The notes under the pieces were generated by a model. That model was not told the origin of the DNA. It was given only the letters and a program-made list of their open reading frames with translations, and did not search any database. From the NCBI GenBank assembly GCA_946965045.2, contig OX337237.1:372001-436000 (forward strand): a DNA stretch of 64,000 nucleotides, in the 5' to 3' direction. Below are positions 15,574-30,273 of this stretch, piece by piece. Every line of letters begins with the position of its first letter. The stretch's first letter is position 1. A program made the translations under genes and the position numbers. The stretch comes from Epithemia pelagica. Lineage: Eukaryota; Protista; Bacillariophyta.

Positions 15574-15870
15574 ATGCACGGTGACGGACACGACACTTGG
15601 GAAATCCAGGATTTCGAGCTTGACGTCGCACATACAGTTGTGGCTCACAGAAAGTGGCATTCCAACAATTGGAACCGGTACAAACTATCTAAAATGCTGC
15701 ATTTGAAATTCCCAAGTTTTGATCAAACCGGGAAAAAGGCTTATGATTTCATTGAAGATGGAGACTTACCTGACGACGCAATTGAGCAGGAAGAAAAAAT
15801 CATTGACAGTGGAGACCCGATAGAGCCTTGCTTCGAGGATCCCGACAATGTTGAAGATGATAGGTTTTAG
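15574..15870 (+). CDS. Hypothetical 98-aa acidic protein
   Basis: ATG-started ORF directly after the PLD-like gene; no recognised domain. Confidence 0.3.
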   Translation: MHGDGHDTWEIQDFELDVAHTVVAHRKWHSNNWNRYKLSKMLHLKFPSFDQTGKKAYDFIEDGDLPDDAIEQEEKIIDSGDPIEPCFEDPDNVEDDRF

Positions 15871-16334
15871 GAGACAAAAATGACAAGTAGGAAAACCAAA
15901 TAGTTTACTAGCATGGTCAACTCTTTGTCTGGTAGAAGCCAGTGATCATCGGAAGCATTCATTACCTTTGTTGAATCGTCCCTTGGCCATGGTGATGCTG
16001 TTGCGGGGATTGCTTTCGGTGGATAGAAGACGGAACGCGAGACCTGTGCTTAGGCATCATAGATTACATAGCGTTCATCTACCTGTCGTCGTGATTGTCG
16101 TGACGATGTTCGACTGAGTTCAGAATGAACGTGTCGGGTAAGCCGGCAGGCTAAGGGGGTCTGGGGGTGGGAAAACAACAAAGACTAGGAAGAATTTTTT
16201 TAGCTCAAGAGTCGAAATTCAGTACTTTTCACCAAAAGCTTCCCACGTTAGGCAGAAAACGCCGGGCCAACCCCTATTCAAAACCATTCAGCCCCGAAGA
16301 AAAACAATGATCGAAGAACGGTCATCCATTGTTC

Positions 16335-16449
16335 TATCAATCCATTAAATAAAAACCATTTCACCACGCTGTTCCACGTCAGAATCTCGTCTGTTTTATC
16401 AATCCATCTATAAACTCATTTTTTCACCACGCTGTTCCACGTCAGAATC
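16335..16449. repeat. Two imperfect ~52-bp direct repeats (TATCAATCCAT...TCACCACGCTGTTCCACGTCAGAATC)
   Basis: Copies at about 16335-16386 and 16397-16449. Confidence 0.8.
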
Positions 16450-16745
16450 ACGCCCAACGAACCAACCCACGAAACATCCCCCCACGCCATAAGGAGTTTA
16501 GCAACTTTGTCACTAACACCTAGCCAAACATAGAAGCTGAAGACCCAGACTTGTAGAAATGCATCCGAAGGCAACACAAATTGGAGTAAGATCCCCCCAG
16601 ACATAGGCATTCTTAGTAAGAATCAGGCGTACCGACGAAAAATCGTACAGTATTAGCATACTAAAGTTTTTTTAGAATATAGGCGGGATTACGTTTCTAC
16701 AACCGATCGTACCCATTCACTCTCTCCGTTCCTCGTACTTTCCGA

Positions 16746-17477
16746 TTAGACGAGATCCACACGCGGAAAATAGTTCAAGTACTGATGTTCCTGTACAACG
16801 GCATCCATCAATCCCACGTTAAATTCAAGCTCTAGTGTCACGATAGCATTGTCGTCGAAAATCGTTTCAACCACAGTCGCATTAATGCCCAATTGGTCGC
16901 TCGTCCCTGATTTTTTGAGAATCATGAAACCAGGGTCAACCCCCGGTAGGTAGGTCTTGTACAACTCAGCCGTCACATCACGAATCTCCCAGAAACGATT
17001 TACATGAACAATCAACTCACCCATCAAATTGTTGGTCTTGACGCGGCAAGGGAGCCAGTCGTGAGATGGACTACCAAACGTGACAGGGCGTTGAATACCA
17101 GACGGAAAGCGATTACAAAATCCTCCCTCAATCGTCGACAACTTGTCAATCGGAAAGGGCCTGGACGTAGTAGGCGGACGAAAATAGATCTTGTAGCTAC
17201 CCTTCAATACCAAATCTTGCTCAACCGTAGGCAATCCCCAGCTGTGTCCCTCACTCGAATCCACTGACCACCGAACTCGCATGATTCGTCCGTCATGACC
17301 AAGAGACTCACCACCATCGATCACCTGGTTTGTCTGTTCATCTGCCAAGCCAATCAAAGTTTGCGGAACCTCCAACGCTTCGGAAACGCGAAGCCGAATG
17401 ACGTCGAGTGGAGTGTCTTGCATGCACATTGCACCGAATCCCCACGTCGGCGAAACTTTAACAATAAACTGCGCCAT
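16746..17477 (-). CDS. Protein with two predicted ubiquitin-like (beta-grasp) domains (Ubl-1), 243 aa
   Basis: ATG at 17477 (MAQFIVKV). The C-terminal unit LIVHVNRFWEIRDVTAELYKTYLPGVDPGFMILKKSG..QLGINATV follows the ubiquitin pattern TI..VK..I....GIPP.QQ.L...G..L. Full-length paralog of 28017-28784. Confidence 0.62.
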   Translation of the reverse strand: MAQFIVKVSPTWGFGAMCMQDTPLDVIRLRVSEALEVPQTLIGLADEQTNQVIDGGESLGHDGRIMRVRWSVDSSEGHSWGLPTVEQDLVLKGSYKIYFRPPTTSRPFPIDKLSTIEGGFCNRFPSGIQRPVTFGSPSHDWLPCRVKTNNLMGELIVHVNRFWEIRDVTAELYKTYLPGVDPGFMILKKSGTSDQLGINATVVETIFDDNAIVTLELEFNVGLMDAVVQEHQYLNYFPRVDLV

Positions 17478-17830
17478 CTCGTCCCAACAACGAAGTGCCG
17501 CGACGGCAAAACAACCAACTGAACCATAGTCTTGACAACTGAGGTAAGTGCACAAAAGCAGACTGTGGTGGACACGAAAATTTATGAGACAACTTCGTCT
17601 CTAACCTTTTCCTCTATTCTGTTACCAAAAAAACCCACCCGCAAACCTATTTGACAGAAACCAACCGTAACCACACCTCCACGGAGGTCGTGCCGTGGAA
17701 ACTCGTCACGGTGGACAGAAACCGACCGACACGACAACCAACCGAAAACCCACCCAACAATCAAACACATTTCGACGACGGACCGTGCCATGGCTATAAA
17801 GCTACGTTGGTTGTTCCATTGTTTTGTTAC

Positions 17831-18496
17831 ATGTATCCTCGTCGTGCCATCTACCGTAACCGTGCCGGCTTTTTGCGTCATCCAGGCATGCCTGGTTATC
17901 GTGCACGCACAACGATCGACGGCGGCTGTTCCTTCCAACCCGTGGATTGTTACGTGCGTGTGAGTGATACGGTCGACTTCCGTACCTGCGTAGTCAAAAA
18001 GTACTCCACGGCAATTCACGTTTTACGCACCATTGCAAAAAAGATGCGGATTCCACTATGTGACATTCGCCTAACCAAGCAAAACGGAAAACGGATTGCT
18101 ATGAAGGCATATGTGTACGAAAACGACAGCGATCTCACTAACGGTGCTATTACACTGGCTATGGTGATGGGAAGTCATCGTGATTTCAGCGAGACTTACC
18201 TTCCCGAGAATTTTTCGCTTTCGTCAACACCAGAATGCAAACAGGAGAGCGACAATGAGCAAGACGACGAGGATGAGGAAGACGATTCCGAAGAGGAGCT
18301 AGATGGGCAAGACCATGAGGATGAGGAAGATGATTCTGAAGAAGAGAAACAAGACGGGCAAGACCATGAGGACGATGATTCAGAAGAAGATGATGATTCC
18401 GTTGTGTTGGTTGACAAGAACGAACAAATGGAGAGCAATGGAGGCAAGCGAGACTCGTGCCGATCGTCGCGTTTGGTTGAAGAGGCGTATGTCTGA
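17831..18496 (+). CDS. SUMO/ubiquitin-like domain protein with long acidic tail (Ubl-2), 221 aa from the first in-frame ATG
   Basis: VRVSDTVDFRTCVVKKYSTAIHVLRTIAKKMRIPLCDIRLTKQNGKRI...DLTNGAITLAMVMG resembles a SUMO/Ubl fold and is followed by a D/E-rich repeat. Probable 5'UTR intron 17544-17657 (GTAAGT...CTAAC...TTGACAG). Confidence 0.6.
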   Translation: MYPRRAIYRNRAGFLRHPGMPGYRARTTIDGGCSFQPVDCYVRVSDTVDFRTCVVKKYSTAIHVLRTIAKKMRIPLCDIRLTKQNGKRIAMKAYVYENDSDLTNGAITLAMVMGSHRDFSETYLPENFSLSSTPECKQESDNEQDDEDEEDDSEEELDGQDHEDEEDDSEEEKQDGQDHEDDDSEEDDDSVVLVDKNEQMESNGGKRDSCRSSRLVEEAYV

Positions 18497-19133
18497 TTGT
18501 TGCGGCTCGTCTCCAGTTGCGGCGGATCAAGAAACCAAACACCATTGTTTTTTGACGTGAAAAATTGAGTACCTTTCCGCCGTCTGTCGTCTTTACCACG
18601 TCTCAATTTAGATGACAGTAGTTTCTCTTGCATCACATCTTCTTGTTCATTTCCATAGGGATCTTCTTGTTGGGATCTTCTTGTTCATTTCCATAGAAAG
18701 TGAGAGCCAAATGGACAACGGCAGCCTTGAGAGCCTCCATTTGGCCGTATCGCCATTGTTCCCCGATCTTTTTGGACAATCCTTTGCCAATTAGGCATCT
18801 TTGGTCTTTGGCATGTCGTCGATGATGGATGGTCAACAAATAACGCTAAACGCACGTCTCGTATTCTTCCATGTCCACGTAGGTGTCTCTCTGTTTCTCG
18901 CTTTTTCAATTGTCAATGGTGCCAACCAAAGATCCGTCATCGCTCCCATGTGCAGAGCGAGACGAAAATGAAAGTAGGAGAATCACCGCGAATCGCAATG
19001 AAGGACAACCACCTGTATCTGTATGCAACCCTATAAGCACGAAACACTTGCGGCGCCGGCCTTAAGACTTAAAGATTAGATTACTACAACAACTAATCAA
19101 AGGCCAATCTCTCCGTGCTCTCCATACAAGACG

Positions 19134-20014
19134 TCAGCCTTGAGTCATGCCGGGATATCCGAACTTGAAGCGCGCGACATTCGAATAACGACCGTTACGG
19201 TCGACGCTGAAAACCGAGTCATGTTCCACGTGTTCACCACCTTCACCACCGTCAAAAAACTGGGAATAAAAATCCGTCGTGGGACTCCCTTCCTCGGCCA
19301 AGTAGCTATCGATTATTTCCGCCACGTGCTCATCTGTAAATAGATGATCAAGCGCGCAAGGCGGGCTCTGAGTGTGGTCGAACTCCGCCTTGTAAATATA
19401 GTCCTTTTTCCAAGTAACATTGGGGTTCTCATTGTCCGCGCGCTCAAGAATCTCGATTAGCTTCTCCGCGAATTCTTTCTTGAGCTGCGCGTGCGCAGTG
19501 CTATCAACCAACGGATCGTGCTCGGTAGGCGGGCACGCGACAACACATGGCCAGAAAAAAACACCTTGGTTCGGCTTGGGGGGGCCCTTCACCAACGGAA
19601 GGTTCTTCTCGCGCGACACACGACGGTGTAGGGTAGTGATGCGCATGTCATACGATTCGAGCTCGCCTTGCGCACTATTGAGAATTTCGTCAGTGACTGG
19701 CTTCAGATATCCCGATTCTTCAACACCCGCCTTCTGAAGCTTAAGATACCCAACAATAAACGCTCCCTTCGGACCACACTGTTCGAGGTGAACTTCCGTC
19801 ACCTGTGGCCCAGCCGCAGATGCACGGACGTCCTTCACTTTCTTCTTCCCTTTCGAAGCAAATGGACTCCTCTTGAGCTTAACGGGAGTAACCACTCTGT
19901 GTGCACCCTGGGACACATCGGATGTTTCTGTTGCGTTGGTCTGCAAAAATGGGGAAGGTAAGTAAGCGCCGGGCCAAGCACCATGGTTATTGCACGACGA
20001 ACGGAACTCACCAT
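19134..20014 (-). CDS. Hypothetical 269-aa protein with an ATG-only first exon and a 71-nt intron (20011-19941)
   Basis: ATG|GTGAGT donor, CTTAC branch, TTTTTGCAG acceptor; joins in phase to the long ORF ending at 19134. No recognised domain. Confidence 0.65.
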
Positions 20015-20197
20015 GCTGTCTTACTCAACTTTCTCCAGATAAGACACAAATTGTTCTCAGCCGGATTTATGAGATCAACAGGAAATGAATGCTGTTAAGG
20101 TTGATTGTCGTGCCATCTCCATCAGTCCATTAACGTCGAATCCAGGTCGAGTCGTACCGTGGACTGCAACGGTCCATTTATGTCATCATCAGGACAC

Positions 20198-20489
20198 ACA
20201 ACAATTTACACACATACCCAACAATCAACCACGAATGCAGCAGCGTGAATCACCGGACGAAGTGCCAATGCAATCGGAGACACCACAAACAGCACACAGA
20301 TTCAACAATCAACCACGACCGCAAGAGGACCGTGGAACACAACCGACAACAATTTACACACATACCCAACAATCAACCACGAATGCAGCAGCGTGAACCA
20401 CCCGACGAAGTGCCAATGCAATCGAAGACACCACAAACACCAACAGATTCAACAATCAACCACGACCGCAAGAGGACCGTGGAACACAA
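20198..20489. repeat. Tandem duplication, period 148 bp
   Basis: ACAATTTACACACATACCCAACAATCAACCACGAATGCAGCAGCGTGAA... starts at 20201 and again at 20349. Confidence 0.9.
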
Positions 20490-21770
20490 GAGCGTGAAAC
20501 ACCACGCCGTACCGGGGGAGATGCCAATGCTGACGGAGACACAACAACGCGATGCACAGCAATCAAACTACCTAGTCCGTTCCCATCAGCCCACGGCGTG
20601 CAGTCTATTTCCACGATCTTTCAAGCACCACACATATTCAACAATCAAACACGACCGCAGCGTGAAACACAACACTAGTACACTATTCTAGCGTGGTGAT
20701 TAACGTAGTAGTCCGGCGTGTTAGTTGTGTGCCGTCCACGTTTTTCTAGTACATTACGGATTGGAACTGATCAGCATCCACTCCATCCATCTTGTCTCAT
20801 TATTTCTTGCTTTCATTATTTTGTTTTCCGGTGCTGGTTCACAGTTCACAGCTCACAGCATAATTTGTCGGTTGGTTGTTGGTACTTGGTACGAAGTTTA
20901 TCACACGTATTGTTGTGTAACCGCGTGTTCTTGTGGCGGCTGAGTAACCACGTGTAACCACGTGTGTTTGTGTGAAACGATATGAGGAAGGAAGTGTATC
21001 GCTTGATTCCGTGTGTGAGTTCTGTGTCTTTGCTAACAAAATCCGGGGAACCATCGGTGGTAACCAATCCAACCGGCAACTGGATTTCCAATCCCTAGAG
21101 ATTGTTGAACACCCCCATCCCGTACCTTGAGTACAAGTAGACCGAAAGGTTGAAAAGAGGGCGATCCTTGCCAGACCGGCTGGATACCGTCAGGGGGGCG
21201 GAGTTTAAAGTACTCGACAGGTACAACTCCGCGTGCTACGGCACATCATTGCGCACTAACGAAACATCTGTCGCGGCTGTGCTCGCCACATAGTCGGTAC
21301 TCTTTTCTGCATCACGGACAGGGCGACTGATTCCGCGGGACCGAAACTGAATCTCGCTTGTCTAACGACATCGTCTGTCGTCGGCCGTGTGAAGAGGGCG
21401 ACTGATTCGCAATCTGAACGGAAATCTGAATCTTGGTTGACCGAGGACGCCATCTGTCGTCGGCCGTGTGGAGTACGGGCAAGGGACTGGCGATCCCACA
21501 GTGATTGGGCAAGACTCAAGTATCAAGACTACAAGGACAGGCTCAGTGCGTGGATCCCTAACAGGTGAAGCTGCCAGTCACGTGACATTATTGTCTGTGA
21601 TAAACTGACAACCTGGATTACTACGGTGTGAGGGGCCCGCGTTTCCTAATTAGTCGGGTACTACGGCAACGCGGCTGTTGGAAAAGAGGCTTCCTCAATA
21701 GTTGTTTCTGACAACAAAGAAATTCCCGCCACAGCTTTCGTGCTTACAGCAACTTACACTGAGTAACATA

Positions 21771-22005
<235 letters not shown>

Positions 22006-22012
22006 CAGCGAC

Positions 22013-25000
22013 ATGCATTTTGTTTATTTGATTTTTAGCTTCATTTTAGTCATGAATGCAGATGTTAGGGCAAGATCTCAGGGCATTAGAAATGCAGAAT
22101 CCGCGCGCAATGGGTTGTTGTACACAGACGCACGGGGCAACTCCAACGCAAAAATATGCTGTGTTTGTGACACATTGATTCCATACGGTGATGAGAAATG
22201 CTTGACCATACAGGACATCCGTCACAAACGTTTGTGTTCTGTGTTGTCGAAGAAGAACTTGGGTTTGTTGGAGTATGGGATTAAACAGGAAGGGCAGGTT
22301 GCTATCCAGAAGCACTATACACAGCACTGTTATACGACTAGGCGAAAGGAGTATAAGTTTCTGAACAATTTGGTTTTGTCCCCCAAATCATACCCCGCCA
22401 AAAAGGGCACAAAAGAAGGCCTTGGATGCTGTAGGGCTTGTCACTCGCACCTTCAGAACATGAAAAACAAGAAAGGTGACTGCACCCCACCACGCTATGC
22501 CATTGTTAACGGCCTATCGATTGGAAAGCCTCCTGTGTGTTTGAAAGACCTTAATGAGGTTGAATTGGCTATGATAGCGCCCGCTAGGACAAACAAACAC
22601 ATTTTTTCATTTACCGCTGGTAGCCATAAATCAATCAGGGGATGGCATTCGCTGTACTATAATGACCTTGATGCCGTCAATGGCGTTGTTAATTGGTGTA
22701 ATGAGGCAACCACACAACGACACCAGCAAGGAGAAAGCAATGATAGCTTGGGTGGGGAAGAAAACGCAGAAAAGAAGTTATACATTCCTACAATCGCGGT
22801 GGTATTGTGCGGCCCGTTTACGTCGGCCCAGCGTGCAAAAGTGAGGGAGAAAACCGAAGTGAGATGGGAAAAAATGCAAAATGCACTGGTATGGTTAAAA
22901 GCAAATAAACCACTATATGCAGAATATGATCTCCCAACAGACGCAATGCTGAAACCAATTTTCCTTGACAAAGCAGAGATTGTTCCTGAATCGTCGTCAA
23001 ATGTCGAGCTGGTTTTTGAAATCAATGCGGTTTTCCCGGACTCTGATGAACCCAAAACAGGTAATGGTGGGTTCGCGACTCAGCAGGAGTTCAGAAATGC
23101 TTCTGTAGAAAATTTAGTAACACCAGAGTCGGACAAGCAAGCAACATTGATATCCCGGCCAACCCCACATCTACTCCGTGATTATGAGGGTGACAACTTG
23201 ATTCGTGCGTTCCCCCTTCAGTTTCCCTACGGAATTGGCGGTCGTAATTCGGAGGGTGAATTGCGGCAGGGGGTTGGGTATCTGAAACATTTGTCTATGT
23301 TAGCCCCATCACGTTTTCATGGGGCAGCCTTTATATGTGTCCTTCATAATATGTTTGAGAGACAAAGAATGGTTGCCAATACTTTCCTTAGGGTGTCTGA
23401 TTCACAAGCACAGTCGTTTCCAGATATTTCGACAGAGGCAATTGAGGAGGCCTTGCGGATGATGCAGGACAACGTGTCATGTTCCACCCCGGGATACATG
23501 TTTCTTCAAAAGCTGAGAGCGATTACTTCTTCCATGGGCCATACGTCGGGTTCGGCAAAAAGGGCCCGACAGAGAATGTTTTCGATGATTTCGCATCATG
23601 GTTTGCCGTCTTTGTTGTTTACCATTACACCAGAGGATGCAATTAACTACAGAATCAGGGTAATGTCGACGGGCGGGACGGGCGAGCGTCCACCACCCGA
23701 TCCATTCACTTGTGATTTCAGTGAACTTGCAAAATATGCTAAGGAATGTAAGGAAATTAGGGTTGATAATCCAGGGCTGTGTGCATTTGATTTTGAGAAT
23801 GTACTCCGGATTACAATCGCACATTTGATAGGGTGGGACGAAACTGAACAGAAAAACAAACCCTGCTTTGGAATATTTGGAGACATAAGTGGGTGGTGTT
23901 ACGCAGTTGAGGAGCAGGGACGAAAAACCCTACATGCACATTTTCTGCTGTGGGTGAAAGATTGGGCAAAATTGCTAAATGGGCTATCAGATGAAAGCCT
24001 CAGGGATACGTTCAAGAAGCAAATGGAGAAATATGTGTCAGCCGTGTCAAGTGCGGAATTGCATGGTAACGATTGTCAACCGGTGTGCACAAATGATGGC
24101 TGCTCTGGGTCTGTCTTGGAGCACTGCAGTGCGCAGGACTTGCGAAATCTCCGTACACGGGCAGGAAAGACGGCTTTCGGTGGGAAACAAATTATGAAGT
24201 GTGGGACCTGTGACAAAGGCTACTCAAGTGAGGATCTGGTAAAAATCCTACTTGACCCAATGTTTTCTCTGCAGGGGGGGGGGGACGATGAACCGTTTTG
24301 GCCACATGTTTCTTCACAACACACAAAATATCAGCTACTTATGGAGTTTGCATTGATGCGGCATAATCATCCGTTTGTTCCGAAGATCCTCGACGATAAA
24401 CAAGCTGCAAGGTTTGTCGCAGCTTTGAGGAACCTACATAGTTCGAATCACTGTACAGCATGTTTCAAAAAAGGGGGAGAATGCCGGATGAAGATTCCCA
24501 ACCTTCCCTTTGAAAAAACCACTTTGGTTTTTGATGAGCATTACACTAATTGGTACGACTGGAGAGGGAACAACCGTGCACGACAGCTTTTCCATGTAGG
24601 TCATAAGCGTTCCAGAGCAGATGTTATGATGAATATCCATAATCGTGCGGCAAGTAATCTGTTTGCTTGTAACACCAATGTGGTTGCGGGTGTCGATGGT
24701 GGTAGTGTCATGTATATGACATGCTTTGTGTCGAAGAATACGCAGAATGAGGACAATGAGCATTTTGCTTCTGCCGCAAAGCATATGGTTCGTAAAATGA
24801 AGACGTATTTAAGCAACGATTTAGAGGACAATGAGAATCGGGAGAACAACACTGCCGATACTAATAATGACAGAGTCCTGCACGGTATGCGTGGGCTAAT
24901 TGGTGCTGTTTTGCTTTCTACAGGGGCACACGTATGCAGTGCACCAATGGCAGCGTTTTTGTTGAGGAATGAGTCTCGTTTTGGGTTTTTGCATGAATTT

Positions 25001-27718
25001 GCATATGTTGATCTCAGGGATTTTGAGTCAGACAAACTTCAGAAGTTTTCGTGTGATGCCTATGACGGCGAGGTTTTCCTGAAATCGTCTGTGGCTGATT
25101 ACTTATATAGGCCACATGATTTAGAGGGTGTGTGTCTTTATGACTTCCTCTGCAGTTATTCTGTTGGGTGTGCGACCTCTAAAAACCGTGGAATGGAGTG
25201 GGTAGCAGAGCATCCGTCGCGGGGTAATTTGGTGTTGAAAAAAAATAAGAAAGACAAAATTCCACTTATTTCCTTTCTGGATTTTGTTGATACAAAATTT
25301 TTTGGGGACAGGTCAATTGACAATGTTGATGCATCGGGAGATGTTGTTCTTGATTCTGGTTTGGCAGCCATGGAATCTTATGCAAAGAAGGCCTGCCTTC
25401 TTTTTTACCCCTTTCGGCAGACAGGAGATCTTAGATCAGGGAACGGGAGATATCTGGGGAAATTCCAGCAGGGTTTGGCTGGTGGTATCATTTTAGAACA
25501 GCATTTGACGGTTCTTTCAAACATACAAGACTGTCGTAATAGTCTTAATTGCGGGAGACCGAGCGATTCTCTAGAAAGAGTGACAGAGCAACCATCGCTT
25601 GTTGTTGGTAATGCAGGTGATTCTGAGGAAGAGTGCGAAACAGGAATCGACCCTGGCATGGATGCAGTTTTTGATGAATTGATTTCGTGCCTGGATGTGA
25701 GTCGGCCGTTGTCAAGAAACGCTGATGGATTGTTGGCAGTTGATAGCAGGTTTATTCGGTCATGTGGGACAAACAAATGTGGTGAAAACTTGGTGGTCTG
25801 TCCGGAGTTGCCTGACTCGTCGCCATCAGTGTTTCGTGTCAGTTCGGATGAGCAGGCAGACAGTACTACCTTTGTACAGCATGCAAGTGTGGATGAGAAG
25901 GTATTTGAATCAAGAAGAATCACTTATAGAAGTTTGCATGAACTGTCTGTCCGTTTTCGTGAGCGTGTGATGGGTGTAGATGCTAGCAGTCACCTGCAGG
26001 CAACTGGGACATTGGAGAATATTCGGGCGTATGCGGATGTGTGTTTTGGATCTGATGTGGATCAAAAAAGAGCTTTTGAGTCAATAGTAGCTGCGTTTGT
26101 GCTGGAATTATATAAGGAGGCAAATAGAACACAAGCAGCAGTCGACTCCGAAGATGAACTGGAGGCAAACCACCAGAATACGAGGTTTCTTAGTTTACGC
26201 AAAAAAGAATTGGAAAAAGTGAATAGAGGTCATCAATACATCGCGTTCCTTTCTGGTGCAGGTGGTACGGGGAAAAGCCATGTTTTAAAATCGGTTGTCC
26301 GATATGCCAAGAGCATGTGCCGCAATTTGAGTGTTAAGTACAACAAGCGGACAATTGTTGTGACCGCGCTTACTGGTGCGGCTGCTGTTGGTATAAATGG
26401 TGAAACAACCCATAATGCCTGTGCTATAAATCGAGAGGTTGATGGAGAGGTCGAGGAGTGGACAAATGCGTATATGTTGGTTGTGGATGAAATTTCGTTT
26501 GCATCCAAAGATGTGCTTATATGTCTGCATCATAAACTGCGTGAGATCAAGGAAAATGCAACTGCCCGGTATGGAGGAATTCCTGTGTTATTTGCTGGGG
26601 ATTTTACGCAGTTGAAACCCGTGAAAGGATACCCCTTGTTTGTGTATAAGGATCTTGAACATTGGTATGATTGGGTACATACGTTTATGGAGCTTCGAAC
26701 TAATCATAGATTCGTTGACGATCCAGATTACGGTGAACTGCTTTTAAGGTATAGAGATATTGGGCCTGATGCAATAGATCTGGATACATTGAATACACGT
26801 GTTGTTGGTAGTCCTGGGGGGCCACGTGAGAGCGACATACCGTCTACGGCAGATTATGCCACAAAGTCCAACATTGATCGTGCGGCTATTAACGATGCCA
26901 TCTTTTGCAAACATTTGGCAGAAACACATTCAAAGGATCCGGAAAGGGACCCCCCTTTGCATACGATTTGCGTTCGTGCGTCTGACTTGCGTTGGAAGAA
27001 GCCAAAGACGAGAAGGGACTATGTGGACTTTAATTCGGCCAGTAAAGACATGTTATATGCGTATTGTGGTGAAGGACATGTTAAGAGTAAAGATAATAAG
27101 CATTACGACCCATTGTTGAAATTTTACTATGGTCGTCCATTGATGATTAATGACAATATCGATGTTGAGAGGTGTGTTGCTAATGGGGCAATGTGCACTT
27201 TCCGTGAAGTTGTGTTGATGCCGGGAGTTACAGTTAGTGATATGGAGAAGATATGTATTGATGGCTACTTTGTTTGGTGTGTTAGTGTGTCACAAGTTCG
27301 GGGTTTGAGAGTGACAATGCAAGATGGTGTTGAAGGTTTCGTAGTGAATTTGGAGGCTACAAAAGTTACAGCGACTGTTCAGTTTCTTCTGCCGGAATTT
27401 GGTAGGAATGTGAGGATTAAGAAGACTACTATGAGGCTGAAGCAGTTTCCGATTAATGTATCAAATGCACGAACAGGACATAAATTGCAGGGAAGGTCGT
27501 TGCGTCATTTGGTGATTAGTTCATGGGACTATACGGATAATTGGGTGTATGTGTGTTTGTCTCGTTGTGCTACTTTGAATGGTTTGTTTTTGCGGCAGCC
27601 GTTAAATTTGGACAAAACAAGAGGCATTTCGGAAGAGTGTGCGAGATTCTATGAGTTGTTCAGGGAGACTAAACAGCTACCAGAAAAGGTTGTTCTGTTT
27701 GAGGAGGAGAGGGGATAG
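22013..27718 (+). CDS. Helitron Rep-helicase (HUH endonuclease plus PIF1/SF1B helicase), 1901 aa
   Basis: N-terminal Cys clusters; Rep motifs FTITP, VEEQGRKTLHAHFLLW and YMTCFVSK; helicase motifs SGAGGTGKS, VVDEIS, FAGDFTQLKPV, TGHKLQGRSL and YVCLSR. Confidence 0.95.
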   Translation: MHFVYLIFSFILVMNADVRARSQGIRNAESARNGLLYTDARGNSNAKICCVCDTLIPYGDEKCLTIQDIRHKRLCSVLSKKNLGLLEYGIKQEGQVAIQKHYTQHCYTTRRKEYKFLNNLVLSPKSYPAKKGTKEGLGCCRACHSHLQNMKNKKGDCTPPRYAIVNGLSIGKPPVCLKDLNEVELAMIAPARTNKHIFSFTAGSHKSIRGWHSLYYNDLDAVNGVVNWCNEATTQRHQQGESNDSLGGEENAEKKLYIPTIAVVLCGPFTSAQRAKVREKTEVRWEKMQNALVWLKANKPLYAEYDLPTDAMLKPIFLDKAEIVPESSSNVELVFEINAVFPDSDEPKTGNGGFATQQEFRNASVENLVTPESDKQATLISRPTPHLLRDYEGDNLIRAFPLQFPYGIGGRNSEGELRQGVGYLKHLSMLAPSRFHGAAFICVLHNMFERQRMVANTFLRVSDSQAQSFPDISTEAIEEALRMMQDNVSCSTPGYMFLQKLRAITSSMGHTSGSAKRARQRMFSMISHHGLPSLLFTITPEDAINYRIRVMSTGGTGERPPPDPFTCDFSELAKYAKECKEIRVDNPGLCAFDFENVLRITIAHLIGWDETEQKNKPCFGIFGDISGWCYAVEEQGRKTLHAHFLLWVKDWAKLLNGLSDESLRDTFKKQMEKYVSAVSSAELHGNDCQPVCTNDGCSGSVLEHCSAQDLRNLRTRAGKTAFGGKQIMKCGTCDKGYSSEDLVKILLDPMFSLQGGGDDEPFWPHVSSQHTKYQLLMEFALMRHNHPFVPKILDDKQAARFVAALRNLHSSNHCTACFKKGGECRMKIPNLPFEKTTLVFDEHYTNWYDWRGNNRARQLFHVGHKRSRADVMMNIHNRAASNLFACNTNVVAGVDGGSVMYMTCFVSKNTQNEDNEHFASAAKHMVRKMKTYLSNDLEDNENRENNTADTNNDRVLHGMRGLIGAVLLSTGAHVCSAPMAAFLLRNESRFGFLHEFAYVDLRDFESDKLQKFSCDAYDGEVFLKSSVADYLYRPHDLEGVCLYDFLCSYSVGCATSKNRGMEWVAEHPSRGNLVLKKNKKDKIPLISFLDFVDTKFFGDRSIDNVDASGDVVLDSGLAAMESYAKKACLLFYPFRQTGDLRSGNGRYLGKFQQGLAGGIILEQHLTVLSNIQDCRNSLNCGRPSDSLERVTEQPSLVVGNAGDSEEECETGIDPGMDAVFDELISCLDVSRPLSRNADGLLAVDSRFIRSCGTNKCGENLVVCPELPDSSPSVFRVSSDEQADSTTFVQHASVDEKVFESRRITYRSLHELSVRFRERVMGVDASSHLQATGTLENIRAYADVCFGSDVDQKRAFESIVAAFVLELYKEANRTQAAVDSEDELEANHQNTRFLSLRKKELEKVNRGHQYIAFLSGAGGTGKSHVLKSVVRYAKSMCRNLSVKYNKRTIVVTALTGAAAVGINGETTHNACAINREVDGEVEEWTNAYMLVVDEISFASKDVLICLHHKLREIKENATARYGGIPVLFAGDFTQLKPVKGYPLFVYKDLEHWYDWVHTFMELRTNHRFVDDPDYGELLLRYRDIGPDAIDLDTLNTRVVGSPGGPRESDIPSTADYATKSNIDRAAINDAIFCKHLAETHSKDPERDPPLHTICVRASDLRWKKPKTRRDYVDFNSASKDMLYAYCGEGHVKSKDNKHYDPLLKFYYGRPLMINDNIDVERCVANGAMCTFREVVLMPGVTVSDMEKICIDGYFVWCVSVSQVRGLRVTMQDGVEGFVVNLEATKVTATVQFLLPEFGRNVRIKKTTMRLKQFPINVSNARTGHKLQGRSLRHLVISSWDYTDNWVYVCLSRCATLNGLFLRQPLNLDKTRGISEECARFYELFRETKQLPEKVVLFEEERG

Positions 27719-27728
27719 TACCGCTTTC

Positions 27729-27930
27729 GATGTTTTTGGATCGACACCAGTCCATTTCCGTCAAAAATTTGATTCGTGAGGCCCAGTTCTATCATCCGTC
27801 GGCCTTGCGTCGTTCCTTGTCCGTTCCAATCGATTGTTTGTGTACAAATCAAACATGCATTGATGGTTTTGGATTGACAGTCCATTTCCGTCAGAAATTT
27901 GAGTCGTGAAGTCCGGTTCTATCATCCGTC
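27729..27930. repeat. Two imperfect ~70-bp direct repeats just 3' of RepHel
   Basis: CAGTCCATTTCCGTCA.AAATTTGA.TCGTGA...GTTCTATCATCCGTC at about 27729-27800 and 27862-27930. Confidence 0.85.
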
Positions 27931-28016
27931 ATCAGACAGCCAAATCGGGCTTTCATTGGTCTCATAAATTCTGTGAGATAGATTTCTGTTGGGTTGTTGG
28001 TTAAATAGTCAAGATC

Positions 28017-28784
28017 ATGTGCCGTTATATTGAATTGTCCTTGGATAGTTGTGATTTTGAGACAAGCGATAAGTCAGTGGAGTTTCAGGTTCAGGTTGGT
28101 CTGTCGGATCGCTGGCGGTTCAAAGGAGTGTGTCCACGGAACACACGGATGGCTGTGCTTTGCCAGAAGGTTGCTGATGCATTGGAAGTTGAGGCTTGTT
28201 TAAAAGGGTTAGTCTGTTTCACGACGAATCGGGCGGTCAGTGGTCGTGAATGTGTCGGTGACCAGTGCTGTGTGGGAGTTCGGTGGGCTGTGAATCCAAA
28301 TGAGAGGAATGATACCTGGGGGTTCGAACGTGCAACACCAGATGACTTCGTGCTGCGTGATACCTACAATAGATATTTTCGTTGTGAGGCCAACGAGTAT
28401 GTTGATCTGTTGAATGAGTGGGAGCGTGGGTATGATTGTTCCTTTCCGTCTGGTCGCGAATGGCCGGTCACGTTCCAAGAAAATGTGGTTAATTGGCTGT
28501 CTTGTCGTGTGGCTACGAATGCATTGTTAGGGGAGTTCACCGTCATTATTAACTGTTATTGGAAGGTTCGCCATGTTAAAGCGGAGTTGTATAAGTTTTT
28601 GGGGGTCGATCCAACTTTTATGATTCTTCAAAAGTCGAGAGAGAGTGCAGAATTAGATGACGATGCAGCGGTGATCCAAGAGATTTATAGGGAGAATTGT
28701 ACGGCGGTTTTGCAGTTGTCCTTGGATGTTGAAATGATGGTCAAGTTGGTGGCAGGGCATCCATTGTTGTGTTTCTTTCGTTAA
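28017..28784 (+). CDS. Protein with two predicted ubiquitin-like domains (Ubl-3), 255 aa; paralog of Ubl-1
   Basis: Aligns end to end with 16746-17477 (FPSG.. PVTF, W..CRV.TN.L.GE, V.AELYK..GVDP.FMIL.KS). KVRHVKAELYKFLGVDPTFMILQK...ELDDD is ubiquitin-like. No C-terminal GG. Confidence 0.62.
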   Translation: MCRYIELSLDSCDFETSDKSVEFQVQVGLSDRWRFKGVCPRNTRMAVLCQKVADALEVEACLKGLVCFTTNRAVSGRECVGDQCCVGVRWAVNPNERNDTWGFERATPDDFVLRDTYNRYFRCEANEYVDLLNEWERGYDCSFPSGREWPVTFQENVVNWLSCRVATNALLGEFTVIINCYWKVRHVKAELYKFLGVDPTFMILQKSRESAELDDDAAVIQEIYRENCTAVLQLSLDVEMMVKLVAGHPLLCFFR

Positions 28785-30273
28785 ATCGATTTGGTCATGT
28801 GAGCGGGTAGACAGGGGTCTTGAGTGTTGCTGTATGGTTTGGATGGCCTAATGTTACTCTTGAAATTTAATTTATTCTCCTAGTCATGATTGTTATGGAA
28901 CTTTAGAGTCCCATCTCATAGTGGGTGGATTTCAGGTTGTTTTGATCTACTCTTTCCTCTTCTTGTTTTGACGTGGACCGACGTGGTGAGGTGGTTGTGA
29001 TTTATTGCGGACGCCAGCCCCAGCCGTCATGGGAGGTATGGGTGGGTCAGGTTGGCGTGGTAGGTTATGAGCCCTTTTATGTTTGGGTGATCGTTGAACT
29101 CAGACGTTCCATCCCGAAGGGTACTGTCGTCTGACTATGGGAGCAAGTCGACTTTGTCTATTGTGTGTCGTGATGACTGTCGTGAGAATGTCGTGATCGT
29201 CGAAAATATGTCGTATTCGCATTGTTAACTCGTACTCAATACGGTTCAGTGTGCATAGCCACGATTTAGGATAGTATACCGGTAGTTGTGGTTGTCATCC
29301 CTTTGGGCACTCCAAACAAGACAAGGCGAGCGAGCGAGTTTCCAGAGACTCTCTTGCAACAACTACAAGAACAACACAAGAACAACAAACTTCCTTGAGA
29401 GCAAAAGAACCACTCTAAGACAACGACCAACAACGACGAGACACTGCAACCAACAAGCCAAAAGAGAATCCAACGAGTTCTCCTCCCCTCCCTCTCTTCA
29501 ACACGACAAACCTCCCTCCACTGAACAAACAAGAACCACTCTCCTTCTCACCACCACCAAGAGACAAACAACGACAACGTCTTGAGATTCTCTCCAACAA
29601 CAACCAACAAGTCAAGAATCGATCCACGAAAACACCGTATTCGGACGTCCAGAACTGCGAGAAGTGGAATTCCAATGGAAAGCCACTTTTTTCTCGGTTT
29701 TGGGTTTTGGGACATTAGGCCCAACTAAAACTAATACAGCTACTAAAGTTACTTAAGTACTCGTCCGAATCCGATTCCGTAGTAGAAGTGTACTCCGCAG
29801 TCCACCGCACTCTCGTGGGATCCCAAAATTGATCCAACCCCTCGACCGGAACCCATTAAAGAGTCGACTACAAAGGGACGACGATGTTTGGACGACAACC
29901 GCCAACAGAATACCTACTACCTAGGTAGTTGAAGGAGAGTGTTGTGTCAAAGATGAATTAGTATCACGGTCGTTCCTTTTCTCCTTGTCAAGAACACACA
30001 TTGTTGTTGTTGTTATCCTGCTCATATTATGGTGGGATCCAATAGGTCGTCCTCGTCGTTGTTGGACCCTAATCCAATCACAGAAATTTTGACAGCCAGA
30101 AAGAGCGATACCAAACTACCCAGGCAGGATACGTTGTTGGAGAAAAAGGCAATTGCTCGTTCAGCATGGACTTTTCCACCGCCAAGACACATTGGTACTA
30201 ACAAATTTATTTCTCCGTGTGCTATCGGATTGTCATGTGTGTTTGTTTGTTTCCGGAGACTCCAACAATGTCG

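Follow-up and report, generated by a model that had tools for sequence, protein, structure and literature searches.

Why would a rolling-circle transposon carry genes for proteins shaped like ubiquitin? The question is raised by a locus of the diatom Epithemia pelagica within a stretch of 64,000 nucleotides (the window; contig OX337237.1, positions 372,001 to 436,000, which is C10:372001-436000 in the genome of 60.5 Mb and 23 contigs that was searched). At least 11 full-length silicon-transporter genes (PF03842) occur in this genome, as would fit a diatom. An earlier note on this DNA had described an uninterrupted open reading frame (ORF) for a Helitron RepHel transposase, surrounded by three genes for which it proposed a ubiquitin-like fold and a role as transposon cargo, with the proteins as decoys or adaptors for the host proteasome, SUMO, or silencing machinery. 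Positions 16110-29127 of the window turn out to be an autonomous Helitron2-type element of ~13.0 kb, each boundary of which is ambiguous within 3 nt, and the cargo comprises, besides the three genes of the earlier list (here A, X, and B), a fourth ORF, Y, that was absent from it. With a confidence slightly above even, we favor the view that this is an autonomous Helitron2-type (HLE2) element with four genes of its own, and that the proteins act as non-covalent mimics of ubiquitin or SUMO. The element and its genes are the following.

16110 to 29127, plus strand: the whole element, delimited by comparison with two other copies, on C5 and C13 (blastn), by the aligned ends of 8 copies, and by 11 empty paralogous sites.
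16746 to 17477, minus strand: gene A, an orphan two-lobed protein of 243 aa in the window copy and 262 aa in other copies.
17831 to 18496, plus strand: gene X, 221 aa, with a predicted ubiquitin/SUMO-like domain (residues 37-113; nt 17939-18169); nt 18245-18445 encode an acidic tail.
19134 to 19946, minus strand: gene Y, a conserved accessory gene of 270 aa.
22013 to 27718, plus strand: RepHel, an uninterrupted ORF of 1901 aa with the Pfam domains DUF6570, Helitron_like_N, and PIF1.
28017 to 28784, plus strand: gene B, 255 aa, a paralogue of A.

The answer begins with gene X. Its AlphaFold2 model, which was based on a 9-sequence alignment from three subfamilies, has a predicted local distance difference test score (pLDDT) of 81-87 over residues 37-115 and the order strand, strand, helix, strand, (strand), strand. 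In Foldseek, this model had 299 matches among PDB chains at E<=1e-3. SUMO1, ubiquitin, ISG15, and NEDD8 headed the list, and the probability was 1.00, with a template modeling (TM) score of ~0.8 on the target. VIA-align, which was run independently of Foldseek, gave Z values of up to 11.2 (SUMO1, SUMO2), with a root-mean-square deviation (rmsd) of 1.7-2.5 Å over 73-82 residues, and all of its top 50 rows (50/50) were ubiquitin-like, with Z of 9.4-11.2. Together, the model and the matches of both programs indicate that X contains a predicted ubiquitin/SUMO-like beta-grasp domain. Pfam recognised no family in the X members, and the sole match of a word-index search with X was a 97% twin, with no relative outside the organism. 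The domain is preceded by an N-terminal motif, GF..HPGMP (Gly-Phe, two residues, His-Pro-Gly-Met-Pro), that is invariant across all three X subfamilies, and it is followed by the acidic tail that the earlier note had rightly seen. Asp and Glu make up 44% of this tail in the window copy and 34-51% across the three subfamilies; its sequence and length vary between the subfamilies, though the acidity is kept.

The translations of A, B, and X bear out the earlier reading that none of them ends in Gly-Gly, and in none of the three X subfamilies does a Gly-Gly follow the last strand. Conjugation of ubiquitin-like modifiers requires a free C-terminal glycine; without a terminal Gly-Gly, A, B, and X could thus not be conjugated, which points to non-covalent binding as their mode of action. 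In the model that we favor, X, A, and B would be element-encoded, non-conjugatable ubiquitin/SUMO mimics that dock the transposition machinery to host readers of ubiquitin and SUMO. Such readers could be repair, replication, proteasome, or silencing factors that bear SUMO-interacting motifs (SIMs) or ubiquitin-interacting motifs (UIMs), or the SUMO E2. Alternatively, the mimics might titrate host ubiquitin/SUMO readers, such as silencing factors, away. The acidic tail of X may offer a second surface for basic partners, which could be histones or RepHel with its DNA-binding face. The mimic model agrees with the text of PMC11417382, according to which Helitron-like elements have repeatedly captured deubiquitinase and SUMO-protease domains.

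The tail could also be the main thing about X. The protein would then be a histone- or DNA-mimicking chaperone or a regulator of the DNA-binding surface of RepHel, its ubiquitin-like domain would serve for docking only, and the tail would be likened to those of single-strand-binding proteins, with no tie to host ubiquitin/SUMO pathways. The persistence of the acidity in all three subfamilies, despite the changes of sequence and length, is what one would expect of such a tail, and rolling-circle elements often bear single-strand-binding genes, for example RPA or Ssb-like_OB, as stated in the text of PMC11417382. We nevertheless regard this explanation as unlikely, since X has neither an OB fold nor a DNA-binding domain, and since conservation in X is highest in the N-terminal motif and in the beta-grasp domain, not in the tail.

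Do these genes belong to the element at all? Eight copies of it were found, on contigs C10, C16, C8, C5, C7, C13, C11, and C3, with a pairwise divergence of 0.25-4.1%, and the genes move with the transposase in 8/8 copies and in conserved order, as expected from the earlier proposal of Helitron cargo. Gene A is intact in all 8 copies (with an in-frame 354-bp duplication in C13), X in 7 of 8, Y in 6 of 8, and B in 3 of 8, and RepHel is fully open in the window copy only. When each variant among the 8 copies was counted once against the family consensus, omega was 0.23 for A (p 2e-5), 0.29 for Y (p 8e-5), 0.38 for RepHel (p 3e-11), 0.51 for B (p 0.017), and 0.55 for X (p 0.06); judged from these substitution patterns, A, Y, and RepHel are under purifying selection. 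The co-occurrence of the cargo with RepHel at other loci, suggested by the earlier note as a check, was seen for A/B, X, and Y in the copies, and it extends for X and Y to other RepHel families. The RepHel proteins of these families are ~51% identical to that of the window, and open homologues of X and Y lie <=6 kb upstream of RepHel at 10/10 other-family loci with a retained N-terminus. X is 34-59% and Y 31-37% identical there, and the gene order and orientation of X and Y vary between the families. Homologues of A and B are confined to the RepHel family of the window, plus one degenerate fragment on C16; a hidden Markov model of A/B had no match in the DNA that flanks RepHel genes of other families in the genome, and, this C16 fragment aside, no host parent gene for A/B exists in the 60.5 Mb. 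The presence of X and Y beside diverged RepHel genes, the family-specific occurrence of A and B, and the missing host parent together argue that A, B, X, and Y are genes of the element. As far as these comparisons reach, X and Y have long accompanied this transposase lineage, and the paralogues A and B are particular to the element family of the window.

Host genes that happen to lie beside a Helitron were rejected as an explanation, as the cargo moves with all 8 copies in conserved order, and so were chance ORFs. A recent capture from a host gene was likewise rejected in view of the missing A/B parent and of X and Y beside diverged RepHel families. One might still take the extra ORFs for passively captured host gene fragments without function for the element, since the text of PMC11417382 describes Helitrons as known for gene capture, and B decays in most copies. 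The lack of an A/B parent in the genome, the completeness of the ORFs with A intact throughout, the significant synonymous excess in A and Y, and the retention of X and Y beside RepHel families only 51% identical make this very improbable.

The members of gene Y have no Pfam match and no PDB sequence match (a hit of the Y profile to a designed protein at E 0.13 was rejected as chance), a word-index search with Y gave same-organism-like matches only, and in metagenome scans neither the Y nor the RepHel alignment had a match.

The fold of A and B is the point at which the model of a set of mimics has to be weighed. Their paralogy, noticed in the earlier note, is clear (39% identity over 243 aa, E 4e-51). 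Its description of both as double-domain proteins receives no support from the sequence: when halves of A, B, and X were compared by BLASTP, no internal repeat emerged, and the N and C halves have no detectable resemblance to each other or to X. An exhaustive search of 1.84 billion representatives with an A+B profile returned 3 clusters, all of the A/B family, one of which is a 105-aa protein that is ~50% identical to the N-domain of A and is not encoded in this assembly. The sole match of a word-index search with B was a 96% twin in an ENA assembly, with no relative outside the organism. Among PDB sequences, the A/B profile matched nothing but a BTB domain (E 1.3), which was rejected as chance.

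The following observations bear on our reading: the N-lobe, Ubiquitin_2, and Atlas matches point indirectly to a ubiquitin-like fold, and the other results mostly weigh against it. The model of B reached a pLDDT of 35, because the A/B alignment is so shallow, and fold matches obtained from it are unreliable; Foldseek returned no match for it at E<=1e-3. In VIA-align, the N-lobe of this model (residues 15-95) matched almost only ubiquitin-superfold chains, among them midnolin, parkin, tubulin cofactor E, USP7, and BAT3, with Z of 5.4-6.5 (rmsd 2.4-3.0 Å, 70-77 residues), a range that can come from a common arrangement alone, and the C-lobe matched ACT/ferredoxin-like and other chains, not ubiquitin. 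Ubiquitin_2 was the sole Pfam family matched, by every B-type protein at residues 180-218, with E of 0.02-0.2 and thus under the cut-off, and the A-type proteins match no Pfam family and therefore no ubiquitin family. Among language-model neighbors in the Atlas, those of B are clusters of the ubiquitin-like (Ubl) domains of USP4, USP7, USP40, and USP47, both for the whole protein (9/10 of the best family-bearing neighbors) and for the C-half, residues 140-255, alone (10/10), with scores of 0.83-0.88 that are leads only, beneath the level counted as evidence. A profile-profile comparison of A/B with X by hhalign was not significant (E 0.47); in its sole alignment, residues 178-221 of B fall on the part of the X domain that holds the helix and the third strand.

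Much of this would fit an explanation in which only X is ubiquitin-like, and A and B are lineage-specific orphans of another fold that, for example, bind DNA ends or regulate RepHel, so that there would be no 'Ubl module'. The poor B model without a significant Foldseek match, the ACT-like and other matches of its C-domain, the insignificant hhalign score, the A-type proteins without a Pfam match, and the mutually dissimilar halves all speak for such a view. We consider it somewhat unlikely, as the N-domain matches nearly all belong to the ubiquitin superfold, as no Pfam family other than Ubiquitin_2 is hit by any B-type protein, as the Atlas neighbors are Ubl clusters for both the whole protein and its C-half, and as the sole hhalign alignment sets residues 178-221 of B on the helix and third strand of the X domain. 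A and B probably each contain one or two further beta-grasp domains; a beta-grasp is somewhat more likely than not for the N-domain, and for the C-domain it is only a little better than an even chance. Of the three ubiquitin-like-fold genes of the earlier note, X thus stands, and A and B are only probable; structure prediction with AlphaFold and Foldseek, which the note had suggested as a check, gave the beta-grasp of X and left B with the low-scoring model.

The remaining points concern function. Of the 8 copies, 5 have a B that is deleted or broken, and some of these losses are identical: a 947-bp deletion is shared by C16, C8, and C11, and a loss of ~221 bp by C5 and C13. As each deletion is common to copies at different loci, elements without B must have kept spreading, and B is therefore dispensable in cis; lineages that continued to transpose after its loss argue against an essential role for A, B, and X together. 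Furthermore, the synonymous excess of X is not significant, and a SIM-like stretch in its tail (Val-Val-Leu-Val, flanked by Asp) occurs in the family of the window only, and the other X subfamilies have not kept it. The mechanism itself is something that we infer, and the searches turned up no relatives beyond this organism.

The transposase supports the assignment to a known group. The uninterrupted RepHel ORF described earlier could be confirmed, and its start is likely Met14 (nt 22052), because codon 6 is a stop codon in 4 copies. Pfam recognised Helitron_like_N (E 3.7e-16), PIF1 (E 2e-18), and DUF6570 (PF20209; E 7.8e-14, residues 159-309), and a motif alignment across families located the HUH motif (His-Ala-His, 641-643), the tyrosine motif (901-905), Walker A (1415-1422), and Walker B. 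In the window copy, Phe905 (TTT, 24725-24727) replaces the second Tyr of the Rep motif Tyr-Met-Thr-Cys-Tyr. This second tyrosine is retained in 7/7 sister copies and in 4/4 aligned RepHel sequences of other families, and Phe is private to the window copy, whose open-frame RepHel may therefore be catalytically impaired through Tyr905Phe.

Canonical Helitrons (HLE1) have a 5' TC and a 3' hairpin with CTRR, and they insert between A and T. This type was rejected for the present element, which ends in CTGT rather than CTRR, has an A before TGT in the left flank of 2/7 copies, and possesses terminal inverted repeats. We place it in the HLE2 group because of these terminal inverted repeats and the DUF6570 domain, and within HLE2 we regard it as Helitron2-like rather than as a Helentron because it has no endonuclease domain; Pfam found no match to an AP-endonuclease (Exo_endo_phos) domain in RepHel at E<=1. 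According to the text of PMC11417382, the DUF6570 N-terminal domain of the transposase is almost exclusive to HLE2.

The ends of the element, which the earlier note had proposed to define from a multi-copy alignment, were obtained in this way, with 7 copies aligned on the left (C3 lacks the first 230 bases) and 8 on the right. Similarity to the fully fetched copies on C5 and C13 spans window positions 16107 to ~29129 and stops abruptly on both sides (blastn). In a short pattern search, 11 paralogous sites on C10 proved to be empty, with the left flank fused to the right flank across one TGT, and the insertion of the window copy was therefore precise and without target duplication. The TGT is present at both ends, which explains the ambiguity of 3 nt. 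If it is given to the left flank, this flank ends with T in 7/7 copies, and the right flank starts with C in 6/8 and with T in 2/8, so the target site is T^C in 6 copies and T^T in 2, and only the latter agree with insertion between T and T. The two terminal sequences are the following.

16110 to 16389, plus strand: left terminal sequence of ~280 nt, common to non-autonomous derivatives, with a 12-nt inverted repeat at 16111-16122.
29082 to 29127, plus strand: right terminal sequence of ~46 nt, common to non-autonomous derivatives, with the subterminal inverted repeat 29095-29106, the CCCGAAGGG palindrome at 29113-29121, and the terminal CTGT.

The inverted repeats 16111-16122 and 29095-29106 are complementary at 11/12 bases and conserved among the copies; by our own estimate, the chance expectation for such a pair in two 40-nt ends is ~0.002. 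The only candidate for a 3' stem-loop is the 3-bp palindrome CCCGAAGGG, and folding of the 3' end gave no support for it as a hairpin (z-score -0.07). The left end of 280 nt was found at >=17 extra loci with 92-96% identity, and the matches terminate at query base 280. In ten clear pairs, the left 280 nt and the right 46 nt lie on the same strand, 0.36-9.5 kb apart. Judged by these shared ends, at least 10 short elements are non-autonomous relatives; they carry none of the genes of the element (e.g., C1:6213976-6216046, C2:5805029-5807478, C3:570019-570382, and C8:888987-891421) and are presumably moved in trans.

The insertion site itself lies in a host repeat that is confined to contig C10 (window flanks 15707-16106 and 29132-29531) and also occurs there at ~495-585 kb, 650 kb, and 2.64 Mb; some of the repeat units are spaced by ~6.5 kb (e.g., 501960 and 508525; 540213 and 546784).

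The copies also differ in ways that touch individual genes. In the window copy, a private 7-bp deletion (~17480-17500, upstream of the Met of A) shifts the usual start of the family out of frame and costs gene A 19 N-terminal residues, and the 7 other copies keep the 262-aa form. The duplication within gene A of the C13 copy (C13:2243635-2244717) is a tandem one that leaves a 398-aa open frame, and a 380-aa form of the gene A product is present in a public ENA assembly. The C11 copy is nearest overall to C13 (0.72%), yet has the B deletion of C16 and C8, whereas C13 has that of C5; this conflict suggests that the copies are mosaic, via recombination or template switching. The most variable part of the element is the intergenic stretch beyond X, with 0.10 variants per site at 18950-19133, and the adjoining positions 18540-18947 are largely replaced or expanded in C16 and C8 (~500 extra bases, in many small blocks). 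Between Y and RepHel, at 20085-20691, two repeats of ~150 bases yield ORFs that resemble a Gln/Pro-rich protein; this is probably non-coding repeat DNA, since all other copies have a 10-base frame-breaking insertion. One further feature precedes the transposase.

21774 to 22005, no strand assigned: microsatellites (AAGGAC)15 and (ACA)50, immediately upstream of the RepHel ORF.

The length of these microsatellites differs between copies by up to ~400 bases in total.

Why rolling-circle transposons need the ubiquitin/SUMO system is a question that this young element family lets one test, as it offers defined ends, an empty site, non-autonomous partners, and ubiquitin-shaped proteins in place of proteases. 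X is conserved over transposase families that are only half identical, and the case also illustrates that accessory genes unseen by Pfam can belong to the core of a Helitron lineage.

Among cellular proteins, the RENi proteins (Rad60/Esc2/NIP45) have tandem SUMO-like domains without Gly-Gly that bind the SUMO E2 and SIM-bearing proteins non-covalently and serve genome maintenance. They share with the cargo the non-conjugatable SUMO-shaped domains, and Rad60 SLD2-Ubc9 (PDB 3rcz) was among the VIA-align matches of the poor B model. They differ in that there is no sequence similarity (Pfam Rad60-SLD did not match A, B, or X), X has one domain and an acidic tail, and A and B are orphans on a transposon. 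The tandem Ubl domains of USP7 (HUBL), USP4, USP40, and USP47 resemble B in being its nearest language-model clusters, with a USP7 Ubl among the N-domain structural matches; B has no protease domain, however, and with Atlas scores below the level of evidence, homology is only a possibility. ISG15 and FAT10 combine two beta-grasp domains in one protein of ~160 aa, and ISG15 was among the best matches of both X and the poor B model, but these modifiers end in Gly-Gly and are conjugated, unlike A, B, and X.

The closest comparison is with the HLE2 elements themselves. Helitron-like elements are described as carriers of deubiquitinase and SUMO-protease domains in the texts of PMC11417382 and PMC9741609, and some of these captured protease domains are enzymatically active (PMC9741609). 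The element of the window resembles this group in its RepHel with DUF6570, in having short inverted repeats, one at its 5' terminus and one close to its 3' terminus, in the lack of a target duplication, in its non-autonomous derivatives with the same termini, and in having accessory genes upstream of RepHel, and the texts of both papers tie HLE2 to ubiquitin/SUMO biology via proteases. It differs in its insertion at T^C or T^T and not strictly T^T, in a 3' stem-loop that is just a 3-bp palindrome, and in the missing endonuclease domain, and above all its cargo consists of ubiquitin-shaped proteins invisible to Pfam, not of proteases. Accessory domains known from HLE2 elements include RPA, OTU, UCH, Ulp1/Peptidase_C48, a viral-tegument-like deubiquitinase, and F-box-associated domains; of a total of 20, those that the text of PMC11417382 names do not include a ubiquitin-like domain, and a literature search for Helitrons with ubiquitin-like, SUMO, and diatom found nothing nearer than the deubiquitinase paper. 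The bolder generalization, that a diatom Helitron2 lineage encodes required mimics (X in all families, A/B in one, and Y as a partner) to engage or disarm host ubiquitin/SUMO readers, is rather doubtful; if true, these proteins would be to the diatom elements what deubiquitinase and SUMO-protease domains are to animal Helentrons. The element is of a known kind, HLE2/Helitron2, and, as far as the literature examined goes, its cargo is new in kind for Helitrons.

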